A stretch of 57,415 bases of DNA from assembly GCA_025201805.1 (NCBI GenBank), contig MU619323.1:85716-143130 (forward strand). The letters run 5' to 3'. Source of the stretch: Parasitella parasitica NRRL 2501. Lineage: Eukaryota > Fungi > Mucoromycota. The notes under the pieces were generated by a model. It saw only the letters and a list, made by a program, of their open reading frames with translations, made no database searches and had not been told where the DNA came from. Both the position numbers and the translations under genes were made by a program. How positions within the stretch are numbered: position 1 is the first letter of the stretch; every line of letters starts with the position of its first letter. Positions 33,196 to 44,526 of this stretch are shown here, in pieces.

Positions 33196-34932
33196 ATGAG
33201 TGTACCGGCTACTGAAGAAACGTGTCCTACAACGCCAGGATTATCTTCGTTTGGAGGATTGTATGTAATATACGTAGCTGCTATATATGATATCTTCTTC
33301 TCTGATACTTGTCGATAAATAGTGACCCAGGATTCGATTGGGCTTCAGTCAAAGCAAATCCTACTGATAACTGGCATGTCATCGGTTGGGTGGTTTGTCT
33401 TTTATTACTAGCCATTACATGGATTGTTTCTATTATTACAGTTACAAAGCATCTAAAGAATTATTAGTAAGTTTGATTTTTTTTTGTGCATAAAGAAAAA
33501 TCGTGTTTTAATAAGTTTTCAACTACTCAAGTGAACCGCAAATTCAGAGGCACAAATTAAGAGTATTATTATTTCCACCAGTATATGCAACATTAGCCTG
33601 GTTCTCTTATTTAAGATATGATTATGCCACCACGATCATGTTCTTTGCGACAATGTTTGAATCATTTGCTGTTTTCAACCTCTACACATCACTGCAAGCA
33701 TACCTTGAACCGTTTAGAAAAGAGGCTGGTGCTTTAAAAGAAGAAAAAGATACCAAGGTTATGTTTGTGAAGAAGCTTCACTTGTGAGTATATTTGACAT
33801 TGACGCATTGAAATGATCACAATTCTTATAGTTTTTTTTTTTTTTTTTGCAGGAAATCTATGTGGGGTATGCACTATCGAACAATTACTGATATCCTTGT
33901 ATTTCAATATCCTGTGTGGTAAAGTATAGGTATTGTGTAATGTTAAACAGGGCTAATAAATGCTCCTTTTTTGTACAATTTAAATATAGGTCCCTTATCG
34001 ATTCATTCATGTCTATATTTGCCCAATTAAAAGGTCGTTATTGCGAAGGTGTCTACAGTTTCAAGGGCGCCTATGTTTATTTAACCATCATCAACTTCTT
34101 TTCGCTCTCAGTCATTCTTACTGCGTTATTCACTTATTTGGACGTTTATCATCGTGAATGGAAGAGAGGTAATGTGCCTGCTCATGGCATGTTTTGGTGT
34201 GTCAAAGGCCCCATTATGTTTATCTTTTATATTGGCGAGATGCTTTTAACTATTCTCACAACCGCGGGTGTCATTAAAGGCACAGATGGGACACATGGTA
34301 GCCTTGCATGGCCTGCAGATGCCGTCAAGAATGGTCTTTATGTGATTATCATCTGTGTAGTCATGTTTGTCGATTGCTTCATGATGCTTCGTTTCTTTGG
34401 TCCCAAGGACAACATTCAGAATGCTGTCAAGAATGGGCAATCAAACAAGATGGGATATTGGCATGCTTTCTATGACGGTTACATATCGTATATTCCTGAA
34501 TTTTTCTATTCGGTTGCATGCTGTGGAGCGGATTCATTCAAACTGATGAAAAAACGTAAAGCGCTCAAAAAGAGAAAGGAAATGGAAGCATTGAGCGGTA
34601 CAAATAACAGTATGGGCAACAACAGCAATCCCACAGAACATTTGCTCAATAATCAAACTTCTGAATACAAGATGGACCACATTGGTGCTTATCAACCTAC
34701 CTCACAAGCTGCCATATCTTCATATCACCCCAACAATTCAGATGATTCCACTAACAATTACCAAGCGCCAATGCAAATGCCCGATAACACTTCATATCAA
34801 TACCAGCATACTACTTTCTCGACATCGCTTCAACCTCAAGCAGTGCACCATCAGCAGCACTCTACTTTTACTGAACCTTACGATCAACAAAGCCCCCTTA
34901 GTCCTCAGCGACAAAATACACACTCACAGTAA
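33196..34932 (+). CDS. TMEM184/organic solute transporter-alpha family membrane protein
   Basis: Spliced ...WHVIGW...KHLKNY..PQIQRHKLRVLLFPPVYA...FESFAVF...ILVFQYP...YCEG...FWCVKG; multiple TM helices. Confidence 0.88.
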
Positions 34933-35267
34933 CCACTCTAGACTCTTGACACTTGATGTAATTTTTTTTAATAAAATATCTGCCTCCTCCATTATATATC
35001 AATTGTTAATGATCTACGTCTAGACATGAGTAAGCCCTGTCAACATTTTCCATCAGTTTACAATAAGGATTTGACCTTTTATTTTACTCCTAAAATCAAA
35101 CTGGAAAATGAAAGGAAAGCGAAAGGATACTCAAGTCTCTTCAAATCAAGAAAAAATATCCGCCAAAAGCAAAGACGTAGGCCAAATATATTTGACATAA
35201 TGGATCAAAACTTTACTGACTAAAGACATGCAAAGCAGTTAGATTTATTTAAAGTGTAGTTCAGATG

Positions 35268-35761
35268 ACTTCTAAACCCAGGTCTGTAAATTTGGAAAAG
35301 TTTATGCACTACATCAAGACAAGAGTTTCAAGTTCAAACCACTCTGTACGAATATTATGGAAATTTATTCGTAGCAAGAATCCGTGGTTTCCCCCCCCCC
35401 AGTCTGCAAACTACTTCACTGACGCCTCCTAAGAGGCACAGATGTATGCCAACTACTTGCAAATAATGCTGCAAAAAAAGCATCTTTCAGAAAGGTTAGA
35501 TGGCAGCGCAAAAGAAAGGTTATAGGATTAGCAAAAGATTATAAGTAAAGCACCATTTGCAAGCTTTTCTGACAAGTCCACAACTTTTCCCGTTTTGAAA
35601 AATGAAATTCTCTAGCAAGCTTATTCTCGAGCAGAACGATCAAAAACTGATCCGTGGTTTAAGAGTCAAATTTGGTCAAGATGCTATCCTTGTCTTTGTT
35701 AATTAGTCAGCTCTCAACGTCAAGTATCAAGAACCAACAAGAAATAAGGGATTGATACATA
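35268..35761 (+). pseudogene. Fanzor1 (eukaryotic TnpB-like RNA-guided nuclease) relic, 5' fragment
   Basis: Manual translation: SVNLEKFMHYIKTR..LYEYYGNLFVARIRGF...YANYLQIMLQKKHLSERL...PF*KMKFSSKLILEQNDQKLIRGLRVKFGQDAILVFVN*SALNVKYQEPTRNKGLIH. This matches, from my recall, the Mucorales Fanzor1 pattern KFG.DA.LV.GNWSA.N.KYQ.PTRNKG. Confidence 0.82.
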
Positions 35762-35953
35762 CAGTGCCTCCACCCCAAATTTTCGTAAACCTAAAAACAG
35801 AATTCGTTTTGATCTCCGCCTAATTTTCGCTTTTGTTCTTAGCTCAATTTTCGTTTTTGCACAAGCTCAATTTTCGCTGTTGCACTAGTCCAATTTTCGT
35901 AGTTGTGATTTCCAAAGTTCGTTTTTGTTAATTACCAAAATTCGCTTCAGGCT
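35762..35953 (+). repeat. Left TIR with eight AATTTTCG-like motifs at 21-24 bp spacing
   Basis: CG cores at 35784, 35805, 35828, 35852, 35875, 35898, 35920 and 35943. Confidence 0.9.
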
Positions 35954-36191
35954 GCATACAAATTTTCTATGCACAATCCTGATGACACTGTTTGCAAGAC
36001 TTACTATTAGTAATATATTAGTGTCGACAATTAGCCCCGTCTTCATACTGTACATAAAGAATTTTGTTTTTACAATACTCAGTACCGTGACACACGCATG
36101 ATGATCGCAGTCCAATAACGAGATAGGCCCAGTAAACCGAGAAAATACCAAGATTTTTCAACTCTGTTACTTCTTTCATTAAATAAGCAAA

Positions 36192-37511
36192 ATGAGCAAT
36201 AATTTCTTTTACGAAGATGGTCAGGGTAACATTGTGGATGAGCAGGGAAATGAAACTATGGATTTGGAGGAGGAAGTCGATCCTTTCAATCTTGGAACCT
36301 TAATGACAATAACCCAGCACCGATCTTACCAGGATCGCTTTCCTGCTGAACCCACAGAAGAGCTTGATGTTGAAATGGAGGAAGCAGCTGAAGAATTATC
36401 GAAAGAAGTAGCAGGCGGTAGAAAATATAATGTCTATTCCGACAAGCATAAGGCTGTTTTCTATTATTTTAATAGAGTCCAGCTGTGGAAGGCCGCTCCT
36501 TCTGCTCGTAAGGCTCAAGTTGAAATTCGCACAGGACAAATATGGGCAAAGCGACTCAAAGAAGACCCTCAGTGAAATATCTATGAAAAGCAGACCAATA
36601 AGGTCAACCGATTGGCCTCGCAACTTCAGGAAAATCACAAAAAACATCTTATTGACTTTTTTGATATATATCCCCAAGCAACAAGACAAGATGCAGTTGA
36701 AAGTTTAACAGAAGCATTCGAAAACTTCAATTTGAAAACTACTGCTGTTGGAAATTTTATTCTTTACGAGTGCAATCTGACTGTGAAGAGGGTCACCTTA
36801 CAACCTTTGGCAAGAAATAGCCTCGATAATCGTGAAAAGCGTTATAACTGGGTTAAGAAATGGGAAGGCACCGATATGAAGTATCTGCAAAATTGCGTTT
36901 TTGTGGATGAAGCCGGCTTTAGTATCAATATGAGGAGCCCCAATGCTCGTTCAATTCGTGGTACACCAGCAATTGTTGAAACGCCTACTTCTCGAGCTCT
37001 CTCACATACTATTCTGGGAGCCATATCAGCCAATGACGTTATAACAATTGAAATAAGGGAGCCTATGAGGCCCAAGAAAGTGAAGGTTGATGGTAGAAAG
37101 AAGAGAAAGAAGCCTGCAGCAAAGAATATGCCCAAGGGAACTGTTACTGGCCATTACATGAGGTTCGTTTCTAAAACATTGGATGAAATGGATAAATTTC
37201 CTGAAATGACCAATTTCTATATTGTAATGGATAATGCACCAATCCACACCTCGCACGAGATAACAAGGATGATAGAAGCTAAAGGCTATAGGGCAATATA
37301 TCTTCCTCCATACTCTCCAGAACTCAATCCAATTGAAAACTTTTGGTCAATCCTCAAAGGTACAGTTAAACGAGGTATATTTGCTGATACAGAAGACTTA
37401 AAAACTAGGATTGCCGAAGCAAGCAAAAGCATCAGCAGAAAAACTCTTCATAACATTACTCAGCACTCTGTTGACAGTTTTGAGATATGTCTCAAGAAAG
37501 AGCCGCTCTAA
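36192..37511 (+). pseudogene. Tc1-like DD34E transposase with a single premature TGA (36573-36575)
   Basis: Two ORFs lie in the same frame. Motifs FVDE, VMDNA-x-YLPPYSPELNPIE, with 34 residues between the second D and the E. Confidence 0.93.
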
Positions 37512-37539
37512 TAAACTTTTAGGCAGGATGCCTAAAATA

Positions 37540-37870
37540 CAGTGCTTCCGCTCTCAAATCGTACATTTTTTGAACTTGGTGGTACATTTCTCGAAAACAA
37601 AATGGAACGTTCAACCAATTAAATTCGAACTTGATTTGAACTTAATTTGGAACACTTCTCAAACTTCAATTGGAACACACTGTGAACTTAAGTCTGACAT
37701 TATTATTTACCTCTTTATTTTTTACTTTTCTAATTCATAATTAGCTTGTTTTTTTTTACGTGAAGATAGTTACGACAACTGGTTATTACCTTAATTTTTA
37801 TAAGAGACACATTGGACGTCTTGGACGAACAGATATCCTGAAATGAAAGGATTTTATCTTATCATGGATA
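37540..37870 (+). mobile_element. Internally deleted second Tc1-family element (left end plus transposase scraps)
   Basis: Starts TA|CAGTGCTTCC with repeated GAAC motifs, then frameshifted TTGYYLNF...DTLDVLDE...YPEMKGFYLIMD, interrupted at TA|CAGTAGTGGC. Confidence 0.7.
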
Positions 37871-38254
37871 CAGTAGTGGCTTTATGTTAGGGTATCCGAT
37901 TTAAGGATATTTTCTATCCCCAGCATTAGGTGCAGCCCACCCGAAAATTTAAGCAGTGTTTTTGGTTCTAAATTTGTCGAACACGAAGGGAAAAGAAATT
38001 TTTAATAGCTGGCCGAAATACTCCGTTTCGAAAAAAAAATGGCTGCATGCTCTCATCAATTATAACTGTCCAAACATGTCTCCTCCGTTCCTTTATAAAA
38101 AAGTCTGAATCGCTCATTTAATGATTTTTACGATTTGGGCAGCATGACTTTTATTTAATATAAATTGAAGATATTCATTACAAAGATAGCGACAATGATA
38201 AACACAACCACAATGATCTTTATTATTATGGTGAATAAGTTAAGTTTTTTGGTA

Positions 38255-40080
38255 TCACTTGAAACTCAATGAAGGTTTCATCTTTTTTGGTTTCATATAG
38301 TTGATTATCTGGCTGTACTCTTTCTTACTCATTGATCTGCTTCTTCGTCTTTTTGGGGACTCAAAAGGTCTCTTGACACAATAACTTTGATACATATGAA
38401 TGATTTGCTTGATTTTGTGGATGCTTGTCATCAGGATTGGAAGAGAATTAAATGACTGGGGAACATCGATGCTGTATATTTCGAACATTGTATAAAAGTT
38501 GCTGTTGCGCAACACAATCATATAAAAAACCAGCTTAAATCCTTTGGTACGGTATAACATTTAACGATCAGAATGATGTTGGATACAGAAACAAAACTGA
38601 ATATTTTTTTTTGACAAACTTACCAACTACCATAACTATTAGGGCACTCTCCAAGTTTTCTTCGTCACAAATATTCTTTCCAAATTTAGTTAAACGTAGC
38701 ATGTCATAGTGAATGTCCAGAGAGTTGCTGTTACTTTCATTAATTTTCACTTCGCAGTAACCGACCGTATAGTCCGCTGTTCTTTGCTTCAAAAAGAACA
38801 TCTCTGCATCGGGACGCTCGTCGTCTGTGCCGGTACCTAGCGTGTTCGTCCTAAAAAAAACATATTTAGTTTACACGTTTAATACAGATATTACAACGGT
38901 TTTACCACATGAAACTATGGTTTTTGTCATGATTGTTCAACATTCCATTCAATAAGGGGTCTAGATATTTGGTGATCAATTCAATTTCCTTGATTTCGTG
39001 ATTTAATAACGGCTCCTCAGGAAGTTTGTCCACACTACGCAAAGCCATAATAGAAATCAGTATGTATTTCGATTGAGTCGCAATCAATAATACTTACTAC
39101 GCCAAGAAGATGTCTAATACTTTCGTATCAAGATCATCGGCTGCTTCGTATAGTTGAAATATTTGGCATTTTATATTTTTTCGGCTTGAATCTTCAATTG
39201 TCTACAGTTAATAAATTTGTTAAAAGTGCATCAAATTATCTGACATTCTATCGAAGCTTACTGTCATCACACTTTCTAGTTCTCCCACTAGGTGTTTGTC
39301 TACTCTCATTCCCATATCTAAATATTCATTTCTTAAATCCTTGTGATAACAAGCCAAATTTGCAATTCCAATAGAAGTTATTATTTCTTGGCAGTGTTGG
39401 TTTTTCACGAGAAGAAGTACATCGTTTAAAGCTCTAAAATTTGTGTTTCGTAAGCTTAAAAATAAATAAATCCCAACTAAATATACTTACAATAGCTGTT
39501 GTAGATTCCCATTGACGAATAGTCCTTGTGACTTTGCCAGGTTGCGAGATATAGTTGTAAATTCTCTAAACCCTTGCTTGATGTTATAACCATTGCTTGC
39601 ATAATCATGATCATCGTCAATATCTTCTTCGTTTTCTTTATCAGCATCGTCAACTTCGTCAACCTCGCTTCTGCTTTCATTCGTATTGGCATTCAAGTTA
39701 TTTAATATAGCTCTTCTTGCTTCAGAGACACCAGCTTCCAATGTTTTATAGCCTTCCATTAATGTCTTTCTCTCAGCTCGTGCTTCAGCATATAGTATCC
39801 CGACATCAATTGATTTTCCAGTTATTCGTTGACGGTTAGGGAACACGGTTTTAAATGCATCAGTGTACTTTTTCTCCAGATTTTTCTTGGCTTGGGTTTC
39901 TGTATCAAACTGGTGAATATATATCTTGGTGTCTTTTTTATTCAAATCTACAAACTGAGTCAGCGAACATCGAGTTTTGCAGTGTTTTAAATATTTTTCA
40001 ATATCTGTAAGGAAAGACACATTTAATTCACCCACCCTTGTTCAACACAAAGTTTACTTACCTGATGAGATAGAAGACAT
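38255..40080 (-). CDS. Apparently intact 6-exon PD-(D/E)XK restriction-endonuclease-fold protein (Mucorales repetitive / Crinkler-REase-like family)
   Basis: Five GT-AG introns give an open frame MSSISSDIEKYL...VDKLPEEP...EIELITKYLDPLL...WTN...ERPDA...TVGYCEVK...DMLRLTKFGK...VVGFKLVFY...SLSFK*. Confidence 0.72.
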
Positions 40081-40383
40081 CTCGTTGGTTATGATTGTAA
40101 ATGCAAATTAAAAACTCCAAGTTGCTACGCCACACAGTAATTTTAAACGCATAATCTGTGTTTAAAATAGAGTGCAAATAGCAAAAACCAATGGTTTTCG
40201 GCTCTTCCTACGTCATCAAATTATAAAAAAAAACCCTGGTCGCGTTGATGAGCACTGAACGAACCTTTTCTTCTGTTAATCTGAACATTAACAACTGGAA
40301 ATGGAATCACAGGTATCTAACTTTTATTTCACAATCATTCGAAGGCTAACCCTCTTACATTTACAAATGCCTACAATTCTCCA

Positions 40384-40766
40384 TGTGCATTGGAATCCAT
40401 CTTAATGTGAGGTTCGCCCGTTATGATGGTACGTGTGAGCGTAATGCCTACGGTCCTTTGTTGTAACATTTGTGCTGTTAAATATTGCTTCCGGTTCTCT
40501 GTTGGTGTGCATTGGAATCCATCTTAATGTGAGGTTCGCCCGTTATGATGGTACGTGTGAGCGTAATGCCTACGGTCCTTTGTTGTAACATTTGTGCTGT
40601 TAAATATTGCTTCCGGTTCTCTGTTGGTGTGCATTGGAATCCATCTTAATGTGAGGTTCGCCCGTTATGATGGTACGTGTGAGCGTAATGCCTACGGTCC
40701 TTTGTTGTAACATTTGTGCTGTTAAATATTGCTTCCGGTTCTCTGTTGGTGTGCATTGGAATCCAT
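40384..40766. repeat. Tandem repeat, 122-bp unit x3 plus a 17-bp partial copy
   Basis: TGTGCATTGGAATCCAT recurs at 40384, 40506, 40628 and 40750; the units appear identical. Confidence 0.95.
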
Positions 40767-40930
40767 TTTGTTGCAATTTGTTGAATACAATCTCGAGCTA
40801 TTCCGTTGTTTTTATTAGTTTTGATTTTAAATGAATACATAACTATTTTTGAAAATGGATTTAACTTGTCATCGAAATATACACTGATAGACAAAAATTA
40901 TCCGATTTTCAAGAAATAAAATTACATATA

Positions 40931-41961
40931 CAGTACTTCCACTCTCGATCTTTCGTTGCATAGGAAGTGATTCTTGTATTGTAGCATTATCCATTACCCA
41001 GTAATATTCTTTCATTGTTTCATCTCGATCCATAACATCAAATAATTCATTTATAAACTTGATGTAATGTGCTGTCGTTATGCCCTTGGGAGGAGCTTCT
41101 ACTTCCTCATCTAAATCCATTTCATTTACATCACGTTTCTAACCTTTGTTTGTTTTACGATTTTTTGTCGTCGATTTACTTCTTGATTTAGGTGGGGGAG
41201 GCTTTCTTAATGCAACATGCATTACACCAACAGCTGCGATTGCGCCGATAATGATGTGGGTTGTTGCTCCTTTTTCTGCCCATGCCCAGTTATTTTTCAT
41301 GTTGATATGAAAGCTGGCTTTATCGATAAAAACGCAGTTCTTCAAGAAATCAAGATCTGTTTTCGCGTAAATCTGATACCATTCAAACCGTTTTTCCAAA
41401 TTCTCAGTATCATTTCGAGCAACTGACTCAAATGTTGCATATTTCACCGTCAAATTGAGAGTTATTTTCATATGATAATGAAGTTGGCTTCTGGAAATGG
41501 TCAAACCCTCGAATTGCTTTGTTAAACTCTCTAATACATCATTTACTGTAGCTTGAGGGTTTTCTTCTACGATTTGCGCAACGAATTTACAATGTTCTTC
41601 TGTGACCTTGCTTTTTCTACCTAATAACTTACAAGTTTCAGGGCTTACAGGGAGCTCGTTTGTTTCTGTGTACTTTTTCCACCATCTTTGAGCTGTCCTT
41701 TCATTGATTCCCATTTCATGTGCAATTTTTGCAGTTTCTCTACTGTTGGTAGACTGCTTCTCGCTATAGCTGTTGTAGGTAGATAATCTAGCGCTATCTT
41801 TTTTTTTTTTTTTTAGGTTTTACTGCTTTAACTTCAATAGCTGGTTCTGATGATTGCTTTTCGAGGTACTGTTTTTTCGGTGGTTAAACTTCTAAAACAA
41901 TATTCCTCCTCTCTCATTGAAGACATTGTTTTGTATCTTCGTAGAAAAACATGTGATTCAT
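40931..41961 (-). pseudogene. Third Tc1-like transposase, degraded and 3'-truncated
   Basis: MNHMFFYED start, INERTAQRWWK HTH, CVFIDK (E>K), internal TAG at 41139-41141, TTAHY..FI..L.DVMD and VMDNA; breaks off before LPPYSP. Confidence 0.88.
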
Positions 41962-42065
41962 CTTCTTAATGACAATAAATAGAGGTAAAAGAAAAACGAC
42001 GACTTCGAAAAAAAAAAATGCGACAACGTTTTTCACAAAACGACTATCTTTTCAAGACAGACTGT

Positions 42066-42257
42066 AGCCTGAAACGAATTTTGGTAATTAACAAAAACGA
42101 ACTTTGGAAATCACAACTACGAAAATTGGACTAGTGCAACAGCGAAAATTGAGCTTGTGCAAAAACGAAAATTGAGCTAAGAACAAAAGCGAAAATTAGG
42201 CGGAGATCAAAACGAATTCTGTTTTTAGGTTTACGAAAATTGGGGGTGGAGGCACTG
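42066..42257 (-). repeat. Right TIR of the Tc1 element
   Basis: Reverse complement of 35762-35953. Confidence 0.93.
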
Positions 42258-42259
42258 TA

Positions 42260-42554
42260 TGCTCACGAAGAGCGGGTTTATCATATGAAGGCGAGCTAGA
42301 AAAATTCAAAACCATACCCAACCCCCGCCCTTTTCAAACACACAATAACCCGAATGTAGTATACCATGGCTTGTTGAGGTGATTCAAAGAAGAAGAAATC
42401 GTATTGACCCCTGATAAATAATGTATTACTAGCTGTAAGAACTTGTCGTGTCTTGAGTAAGACGATCAAGCTTAATTTCCTCAAGATTCTCAATAGTCTT
42501 AGACAGACAGGCAAACGCCGAAGCCTTTTTAGCAGAAAACACGCTTCAAACTAA
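42260..42554 (+). pseudogene. Fanzor1 relic, 3' fragment (zinc-finger/RuvC-III region) with intron 42379-42432
   Basis: Continues the left fragment across the TA: MLTKSGFII, then EGELEKFKTIPNP(R)PF, VVYHGLL|SCKNLSCLE, DQA and LNFLKILNSLRQTGKRRSLFSR...* (stop 42552-42554). Confidence 0.82.
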
Positions 42555-42559
42555 TTACC

Positions 42560-42630
42560 AAAAGCACTTTTTACCAAAGCTATTGCTTTGGCCATTTAAT
42601 ACAGATACTTCATTAAAATGAACACTATAA
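42560..42630 (+). ncRNA. Candidate Fanzor omegaRNA scaffold plus guide region
   Basis: Perfect hairpin CCAAAGC-TATT-GCTTTGG (42574-42591) lies about 20 nt after the Fanzor stop, where omegaRNAs are encoded. Boundaries are uncertain. Confidence 0.5.
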
Positions 42631-42864
42631 AACGAAATCTGCTTTTTTTCAAATCGACAAAATTTACCAGCAATCAAAGTTGAGCAACCTTCAAACGGAG
42701 TGAACAACCGACGGAAAAGTTTAATCTTAAATGTGCACAAGCAATTATCACAAAATCACAGTTTTTTTGCCGCTTCTCGTTGTTCTTTAACACATCTCTT
42801 CCATTTAACTTATATATAAGTGTCAGTCTATCCATTCATTTCAGCTTTGCACAACATTTAAACA

Positions 42865-44526
42865 ATGACCCGTAGCATTAAAAGTAATAGCAGCTATTCA
42901 AGAGAAAAGCACAATGTCAAAAATATCCGAATTGTGCATCATCCAGAAACTGTATCTATTGATGTGAAAAATGCCAATGATACCAGCAGTGTACCTTTTC
43001 ATGAATACTTGGCTCGAACATGCCCTTCACTGTTTGGATCTAAGGCTCATTATACCCCAACTCCTTATTTGAGGTCTAAGCATTTACAGACCATCTATGC
43101 TTCGTTATACGATAATAAGACAGCAAAAAATGATGTTACCTATAAGAGGTGAGTTTTATTTGGAATATATGCATCTATATATGAAAATCAACTTTTATCT
43201 TCAAGGCAGATTTTGGAGTTTGTGAATGGAGGTGTTGCTTCCTTGGATTGGGCTAATCCAGCTATTGCTCTACCAGAAAATACACCTACGCTTGTCATTC
43301 TACATGGGTTAACAGGTGGTAGCCATGAAAATTATATTCGAGGGTTACTTCAGATTGTAAGCATCAATATCCTTCTATCAAATTTTTTCCTGCTAATGTG
43401 CTATTCTATTGCATATAGCTCACTAGGCCACCTATCAACTACAGAGCTGTCGTATACAACGCCAGAGGATGCGGATTTACCAACGTGAATACACCTCAAT
43501 TATTTAATGCATCTATTACAGACGATCTAAGAGAAGCCCTGAGTCATATCCAGATGCAAGTAGGAGAAAAGACACCCTTAATTGGCATTGGATTTTCTTT
43601 GGGCTCTAATATTCTTGTAAAGGTATATATAATATATAACCTTTTTCTGTTTTGTGCCTGATCTCAACATAATTTCCAAGTATCTTGGCGAAGAAAAGGA
43701 AAAGACGCCTTTGGTCGCTGCAGTTTCTGTTGCCAACCCTTACGATCTCCTCAAGTAAAAGACCAATATAATAATGTAGTACACAACCAATCTCATTATT
43801 CCATTTCGTTTATTAACAGCTCTGGAAAAGTGTTGGATCAAGGTTTCTTTACTCGCAATGTTTATTCCGCTCGCATGACAAACAACCTGAAAAGGATCTT
43901 CATGAGGTAAATTTCATGCATATGCATTGTGTATAAATAAACACTGCTAACACACCGTCAGAAATAAGGATGTCATGCTGACTTGTAAAGATGTCAACGT
44001 GGATGAAGTGCTTGCATCCAAGACAATCCGAGAATACGACGATGCATGTACGAAGAAAATGTCCAATTACACTACAGTCGACAACTATTATCGCGATGGT
44101 AGTTGCGCACGTCTCATTGAGCATGTGCGTGTTCCATTGCTTTGCATCAATGCTTTGGATGATCCTATTGCACTGGCTCATTGTATTCCTGTCGATGAGA
44201 TCAAAATAAACCCTCACATTATTTTAGCTGCTACGAAACACGGTGGTCATCTGGGTTGGTTTGAGCATTCTTATAGACCTTGTAGATGGGTTGATAAACC
44301 TATTTCTGAATTTGTTGTTGCCATGTTCCAGGTGAATTTTTTTACAATCGTTTTTTTTTTATGTGTAGCTTTACTAACTTGGGTCTATGTGTATCGCTTG
44401 TAGGCGAGTGATTCTCGTCAAGAAGCAACAAAATTAGATACTGACGCTGTAGTACGCAGCGCCCAAGCAATTAGAAAGGTCAGATTCCCTCCATTAGCCG
44501 CCGTCATACCCCCAATGATGAAATAG
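42865..44526 (+). CDS. AB hydrolase 4 family esterase (ABHD1/3, EHT1/EEB1-like)
   Basis: Motifs HLQTIY, GGVASLDW, LHGLTGGSHENY, YNARGC, GFSLGSN nucleophile elbow, INALDDPI and HGGHLGWF. Confidence 0.93.

Follow-up and report, generated by a model that had tools for sequence, protein, structure and literature searches.

The 57,415-nucleotide (nt) stretch of contig MU619323.1 analysed here (the window) contains the fossil of a Fanzor1 element. Fanzor1 is a eukaryotic TnpB-like nuclease that cuts DNA under RNA guidance. The remains of the element amount to 1,144 nt in two parts. With a probability of roughly 0.93, they come from a non-autonomous element that carried the C-terminal third of a Fanzor1 gene, decayed, and was later split by a Tc1-like composite transposon. 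The initial annotation, made from the sequence alone, had placed a Fanzor1 gene split by a Tc1 insertion at 35268-42554. The relic does lie there, but those limits are too narrow, as it extends to 35030 on the left and to 42671 on the right. The split itself is confirmed, whereas the loss of a working gene is not, since the subfamily of this copy was already 5'-deleted. The arrangement in the window is as follows:

35030-35761, + strand: left relic part, 732 nt, with 79.6% nucleotide identity to paralog C99; homology to five paralogs starts at 35030-35071
35760-35761, unstranded: TA, left copy of the target-site duplication; one dinucleotide stands at this site in the paralogs
35762-42257, unstranded: Tc1-like composite transposon, 6,496 bp, with inverted ends at 35762-35956 and 42063-42257
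42258-42259, unstranded: TA, right copy of the target-site duplication
42260-42671, + strand: right relic part, 412 nt, comprising the coding end, a guide-RNA segment and a truncated right inverted repeat

Both flanks of the insertion are identified by sequence as Fanzor1 of the Parasitella type, which is what the initial annotation had proposed. The flanks were joined solely in a local script for reading the frame, and the database searches used separate stop-free pieces. Four of these pieces match a single chain in collinear order, that of Parasitella parasitica Fanzor1 (PpFz1) in the Protein Data Bank (PDB 9cf0). Piece 35433-35522 corresponds to chain positions 1036-1061 (E 1e-3, its best PDB match), 35599-35703 to 1098-1131 (E 4.6e-6), 42260-42379 to 1176-1206 (E 6.7e-6), and 42408-42551 to 1231-1258 of 1259 (E 0.078). 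This entry is the first solved-structure match for three of the four matching pieces and the second for the C-terminal one. A Fanzor1 profile of 39 fungal homologs was scored on the 375 stop-free pieces that 5.5 kb of flanking DNA yields when both strands are read. Relic pieces take the first five ranks, all on the + strand and in order, at profile positions 451-472, 498-531, 534-550, 577-607, and 631-657, with E values from 4.6e-10 to 0.04. The matches at 498-531 (4.6e-10) and 577-607 (5e-10) assign the two flanks to the same family, contrary to the outcome that the initial annotation had named as refuting it, and they are followed by 631-657 (3.6e-4) and 534-550 (1.1e-3). Piece 35253-35429 matches nothing in PDB and reaches a profile E of just 0.04. 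Paralog C16, a better preserved copy with a 529-codon exon, matches PDB 9cf0 with E 4.6e-123 and SpuFz1 (PDB 8gkh) with E 3.4e-45.

The Fanzor RuvC insertion (FRI) of PpFz1 was described by Xu et al. 2024 (PMC11423790), and the FRI-bearing type of Fanzor1 has been reported solely from Parasitella and Rhizopus (Xu et al. 2024, PMC11423790). It is a stretch of about 100 residues between YYGNE and LPFRK. Window piece 35433-35522 aligns inside it, and in paralog C201 the domain is aligned without a break. Pfam returned no match for any single window piece, which would suit a chance resemblance, flanks of unrelated families, or an assembly chimera. Even in a paralog, exon 1 alone scores below the TNB domain cut-off, because an intron splits this domain. 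An explanation of this kind is extremely improbable in view of the collinear and significant matches to PDB and the family profile, the contiguity of the flanks in two paralogs, and the RNA contigs that cross both junctions without a mismatch.

Excision of 35762-42257 together with one TA yields ...NKGLIH-MLTKSGF... in a single frame, as read by the local script. All the peptides quoted in the initial annotation are present in the frames it gave. When the assembly that contains the window (32.8 Mb) was searched at the DNA level, paralogs C99 and C6 were found to have the two flanks directly adjoining. C99 has a single dinucleotide at the insertion site (CATGTGC), compared with CA-TA-TGC in the window (CATATGC with one TA), so the excision model holds to the single nucleotide. 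The restored frame, claimed from the first, is thus confirmed by the script and by the C99 join, far beyond chance. The public run X1 is an RNA run, with five GT..AG joints in the neighbouring gene and no cover over 42607-42793. RNA contigs from this run span both insertion junctions with zero mismatches. The arrangement is real and not an artefact of assembly.

The coding remnant of the left part starts at about 35271 and corresponds to approximately positions 955-1151 of the PpFz1 chain. This part has undergone at least three frame changes and contains the following:

35430-35432, + strand: in-frame TAA stop; CAA in C99
35433-35522, + strand: piece of the FRI domain; PpFz1 chain 1036-1061
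35596-35598, + strand: in-frame TGA stop; CGA in C99, AGA in C201 and C57
35599-35703, + strand: stop-free piece KMKFSS...AILVFVN, directly before the G(N/D)WS motif; matched by PDB 9cf0 and the profile
35704-35706, + strand: in-frame TAG stop in place of the GNWS Trp; TGG in C201 and C57
35707-35760, + strand: piece SALNVKYQEPTRNKGLIH, the last codons before the insertion; profile 534-550, E 1.1e-3

Two of these stops had been guessed as CGA>TGA and TGG>TAG, in agreement with the CGA of C99 and the TGG of C201 and C57, and the in-frame TAA stands besides them as a third. The right part has 67-81% nucleotide identity to C6, C1, C99, and C101 (67% for C99) and contains the following:

42277/42278, + strand: site of a 44-nt deletion that lost VYLI(N/D)E..TSS.C..C, from alignment against C99, C6 and C1
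42287-42378, + strand: piece EGELEKFKTIPNPRPF...HGLL, end of exon 1; PDB 9cf0 1176-1206, profile 577-607
42379-42432, + strand: ancestral GT..AG intron of 54 nt that splits the zinc ribbon; a stop-containing gap in C16, C57 and C201
42433-42459, + strand: second Cys pair CKNLSC (42436-42453), then TAA at 42457-42459
42464-42466, + strand: GAT codon of the RuvC-III Asp (RD motif), out of frame between deletions of about 41 nt and 8 nt
42471-42554, + strand: C-terminal piece LNFLKILNSLRQTGKR... with the native stop TAA at 42552-42554; matched by PDB 9cf0 and the profile

An alternative catalytic Glu six residues before the first CxxC is a hallmark of Fanzor proteins (Yoon et al. 2023, PMC10711439). 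The motif is kept in paralogs C99 (LINE...C..C) and C16. In the window, the 44-nt deletion, which sits 18 bases past the insertion site, took both the catalytic Glu and the first CxxC, and the initial annotation was right in reporting this RuvC-II motif and Cys pair as deleted. In the description by Bao and Jurka 2013 (PMC3627910), [TS][TS]xx stands before the C4 zinc ribbon (TNB domain). Here TSS and the first Cys pair are gone, and the second pair CKNLSC is left. The PpFz1 protein is continuous at the position of the 54-nt intron, which is retained in the RNA contig. The RuvC-I Asp belongs to a DPG motif (Yoon et al. 2023, PMC10711439), carried by paralog C16 as IDPGRRD. Neither tblastn nor the profile found a match to it upstream of 35271, consistent with the earlier statement that no RuvC-I was visible, and it is missing throughout the subfamily. 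A possible trace, IVNDLRLDM at about 35003-35029, was rejected, as it lies in host-orthologous DNA. In the window copy, the RuvC-I Asp is absent, the catalytic Glu deleted, and the RuvC-III Asp out of frame, which accounts for all three catalytic residues. Judged by these lesions, the copy is dead and cannot encode a nuclease.

The limits of the relic were obtained from synteny. The solute-transporter protein of the neighbouring gene shares 87% identity with its ortholog in Parasitella parasitica, and the genome is therefore that of a close relative of Parasitella. Synteny of the window with the Parasitella locus LN733663.1, at 80-82%, extends up to 35029 and begins again at about 42670-42672, and these breakpoints set the relic limits at 35030-35761 and 42260-42671. 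Between the breakpoints, the Parasitella locus has neither the relic nor the Tc1. A stretch of about 930 bp at the orthologous site (L062 11836-12765, LN733663.1) includes an N gap and is unrelated to the relic and to the window. It is either an ancestral spacer that was lost in the window lineage or an insertion in Parasitella.

The same breakpoints bear on the possibility that a complete working Fanzor1 gene stood here, was inactivated by Tc1, and acquired its other lesions afterwards. The insertion lies within the coding remnant and the flanks rejoin in frame, as such an account would predict. However, host-orthologous DNA reaches 35029 and leaves no room for the N-terminal ~650 codons, and the 5' deletion and the FRI deletion are common to the closest paralogs. 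In addition, the Tc1 arms are 98% alike, whereas the relic has diverged by 21-33% from its kin, which points to the Tc1 insertion as the later event. Inactivation of a whole gene by Tc1 is accordingly regarded as very unlikely.

The fossil of a truncated element agrees better with the paralogs. The seven closest copies all lack anything N-terminal of about PpFz1 position 955, and an in-frame 84-nt FRI deletion is common to the window and C99. In C99 the whole of a small, non-autonomous element is preserved, 1,247 bp long, with inverted ends TA/CAGTCGAGCTGG..., bounded by TA/CAGTCGAGCTGGTAAATTT and its inverse. About 30 such TA/CAGTCGAGCTGGTAAATTT-type ends occur in the genome, compared with 3 in the control. 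The window copy probably never encoded a whole protein here. The subfamily appears to have been without the N-terminal 70% before its arrival, so that Tc1 would not have killed a working gene. One trace of a family end survives in the window:

42660-42671, + strand: inner 12 nt of the family's right inverted repeat (AAATTTACCAGC), from comparison with the C99, C1 and C101 ends

The last 7 nt of this right inverted repeat and the TA are missing. A search for the left inverted repeat in 34900-35060, which is host 3' flank by synteny, gave no significant result, as 18 and 81 of 500 shuffled sequences scored at least as high. Elements with Fanzor1 alone, Mariner ends, and TA duplications have been described, and several Fanzor1 families have been recorded from Mucor and Rhizopus (Bao and Jurka 2013, PMC3627910).

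Other elements of this genome with related ends were also considered. Related CAGTGCGGCTGG... elements were set aside, being Tc1-like and carrying no Fanzor. A younger Tc1-like family with identical ends CAGTGCGGCTGGTAAATTT is found at C83:47629-52928, C99:54852-58705, and C68:144908 and 149760. Its ends are related to those of the Fanzor-fragment subfamily, and it carries a transposase with an HTH and no Fanzor. This family could be the transposase source for the Fanzor fragments.

The proposed history would begin with a non-autonomous transposon with Tc1/mariner ends and the last third of an FRI-bearing, Parasitella-type Fanzor1 gene. Its landing site would have been the space between the genes for a solute transporter and a hydrolase, at a time when the lineage had already split from Parasitella. 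Both termini would then have been lost while stops, frameshifts, and deletions built up, and much later the relic would have been split at a TA by the 6.5-kb Tc1-like composite element. Several points weigh against this history. The first 240 nt (35030-35270) match the paralogs and no protein. The Fanzor element has kept neither a target duplication nor a left inverted repeat at this site, and its mode of arrival is therefore deduced from the paralogs. Run X1 possibly comes from the assembly strain, so that its support for the junctions is not independent.

The right part of the relic also includes a segment that resembles the guide RNA of PpFz1:

42573-42604, + strand: homolog of the PpFz1 omegaRNA core with its 7-bp hairpin intact; 27/32 bases as in the PpFz1 omegaRNA

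The sequence of the PpFz1 omegaRNA core was taken from Table S3 of Xu et al. 2024 (PMC11423790). An omegaRNA scaffold is expected at or after the 3' end of the open reading frame (ORF), and the homolog in the window starts 18 nt past the stop. It folds with a z of -3.5, and the segment is conserved in five copies. The search pattern was built with the alignment already known, so the chance estimate is generous. Rfam gave no match over 34900-42900. One RNA contig starts in the Tc1 end, at 42212, and extends without splicing into the relic as far as about 42602, where adapter follows directly. A second contig covers the left junction, and a third belongs to paralog C6. The relic is therefore transcribed, as these contigs record, and the RNA may be functionless read-through.

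In sister copies, the omegaRNA core ends in ...ACAG with GT directly after it (GC in the C57 type). A branch-like ACTAA or GCTAAC follows, and then CAG or TAG a few bases before the transposon end (eight bases for CAG). This layout was seen at L022 ~1778-1900 (the C1 copy) and L029 ~2013-2110 (the C57 copy), and the corresponding interval of the window is 42604-42671. The published PpFz1 omegaRNA reads ...GCAG/GTAAGC (Xu et al. 2024, PMC11423790). The window copy has AT in place of the sister GT after the scaffold, and no splice joint was seen in X1. If the sister layout served to splice out the transposon end and bring scaffold and guide together, this copy, which also has a cut-off end, would be a natural loss-of-function control.

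The scaffold raises the possibility that the relic was kept because its transcribed omegaRNA serves, in trans, a PpFz1-type protein from another copy. The conserved core at 42573-42604 with its intact hairpin, the contig from 42212 to about 42602 followed by adapter, and the presence of related coding copies in the genome are in line with such a role. However, conservation of the scaffold does not exceed that of the dead coding part (67-81% nucleotide identity across the right flank), the transposon is cut short at its right end, and AT replaces the GT found after the scaffold in the sisters. The genome searches yielded no demonstrably intact protein-coding copy, and a single contig end is not a mapped RNA terminus. 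A guide role in trans is thus scarcely probable, and the decayed, split fossil is the reading retained here.

The insert was called Tc1 in the initial annotation, and this identification holds with the TA duplication, the CAGTG inverted ends, and a DDE_3 transposase. Its arms are inverted, 199 nt long, and 98% complementary, and they start with CAGTGCC (terminus CAGTG). Two transposases were recognized:

36612-37511, + strand: transposase ORF of 299 amino acids; Pfam DDE_3 (PF13358), E 6.6e-26, 91 bits, above the curated cut-off
40869-41714: second transposase, inverted and decayed, with an HTH_32 trace

The minus-strand ORFs at 38255-40035 have no Pfam match. The insert family is single-copy in the assembly, with relatives that are 70-84% alike. 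The composite also contains three exact 122-nt tandem units at 40384-40769. Contigs of run X1 have a word depth of 6,800-34,750 here; the spliced gene nearby has about 20, and the DNA immediately adjoining the array has zero. No other place in the assembly has the unit, which lacks an Rfam match and shows no unusual fold. These depths reflect either collapse of the array in the assembly or a very abundant RNA made from it.

The host clade is rich in the Fanzor family. A six-frame scan of the genome with the TNB domain gave 49 matches, and a search with paralog C16 gave 59 segments, most of which contain stops. These counts bear out the Fanzor family that the initial annotation had expected in this genome, but not the intact copies it had thought possible. 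Even in C16, an in-frame TAA lies immediately before the 529-codon exon. Open frames of 550-1124 amino acids at TNB matches (L002, L008, L011) were discarded as an artefact of N runs translated as X.

The relic is an ordinary genomic fossil of a known family and has little significance alone. It does illustrate that the order of motifs in raw sequence can recover Fanzor fragments that ORF tracks miss. With it, the FRI-bearing Fanzor1 type gains a further host, closely related to Parasitella. A non-autonomous derivative with the C-terminal third of the gene and the guide-RNA segment is likewise recorded here, a pattern that could bear on the cis needs of such elements.

Among known systems, SpuFz1 of Spizellomyces punctatus (PDB 8gkh) aligns with the paralogs over REC, RuvC, and the zinc ribbon (E 3.4e-45), and it shares with them the DPG motif, the Glu six residues before CxxC, and the RD motif. 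It is far more distant than PpFz1 and has no FRI, and the window pieces alone fail to reach it. The Fanzor1-only elements of Bao and Jurka 2013 resemble sister C99, which likewise has TA/CAGT... inverted repeats and Fanzor sequence alone. In contrast, the window subfamily has a third of the gene, and the window copy is without both ends. Nested Tc1/mariner insertions in older transposons share with the window insert the TA duplication, the CAGTG termini, and the DDE_3 transposase. The window insert differs in being unusually long (6.5 kb) and in carrying an inverted second transposase remnant, other ORFs, and a 122-nt tandem array. The closest known system is PpFz1 (PDB 9cf0-9cf3; Xu et al. 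2024, PMC11423790). Unlike PpFz1, the relic covers only about the last 300 of ~880 residues, contains stops and frameshifts, has lost the catalytic Glu and the first CxxC, is without RuvC-I, and lies in a near relative of Parasitella and not in Parasitella itself. It nevertheless shares with PpFz1 the order of motifs, the FRI, the C-terminus with the place of its stop, and an omegaRNA core homolog 18 nt beyond that stop.

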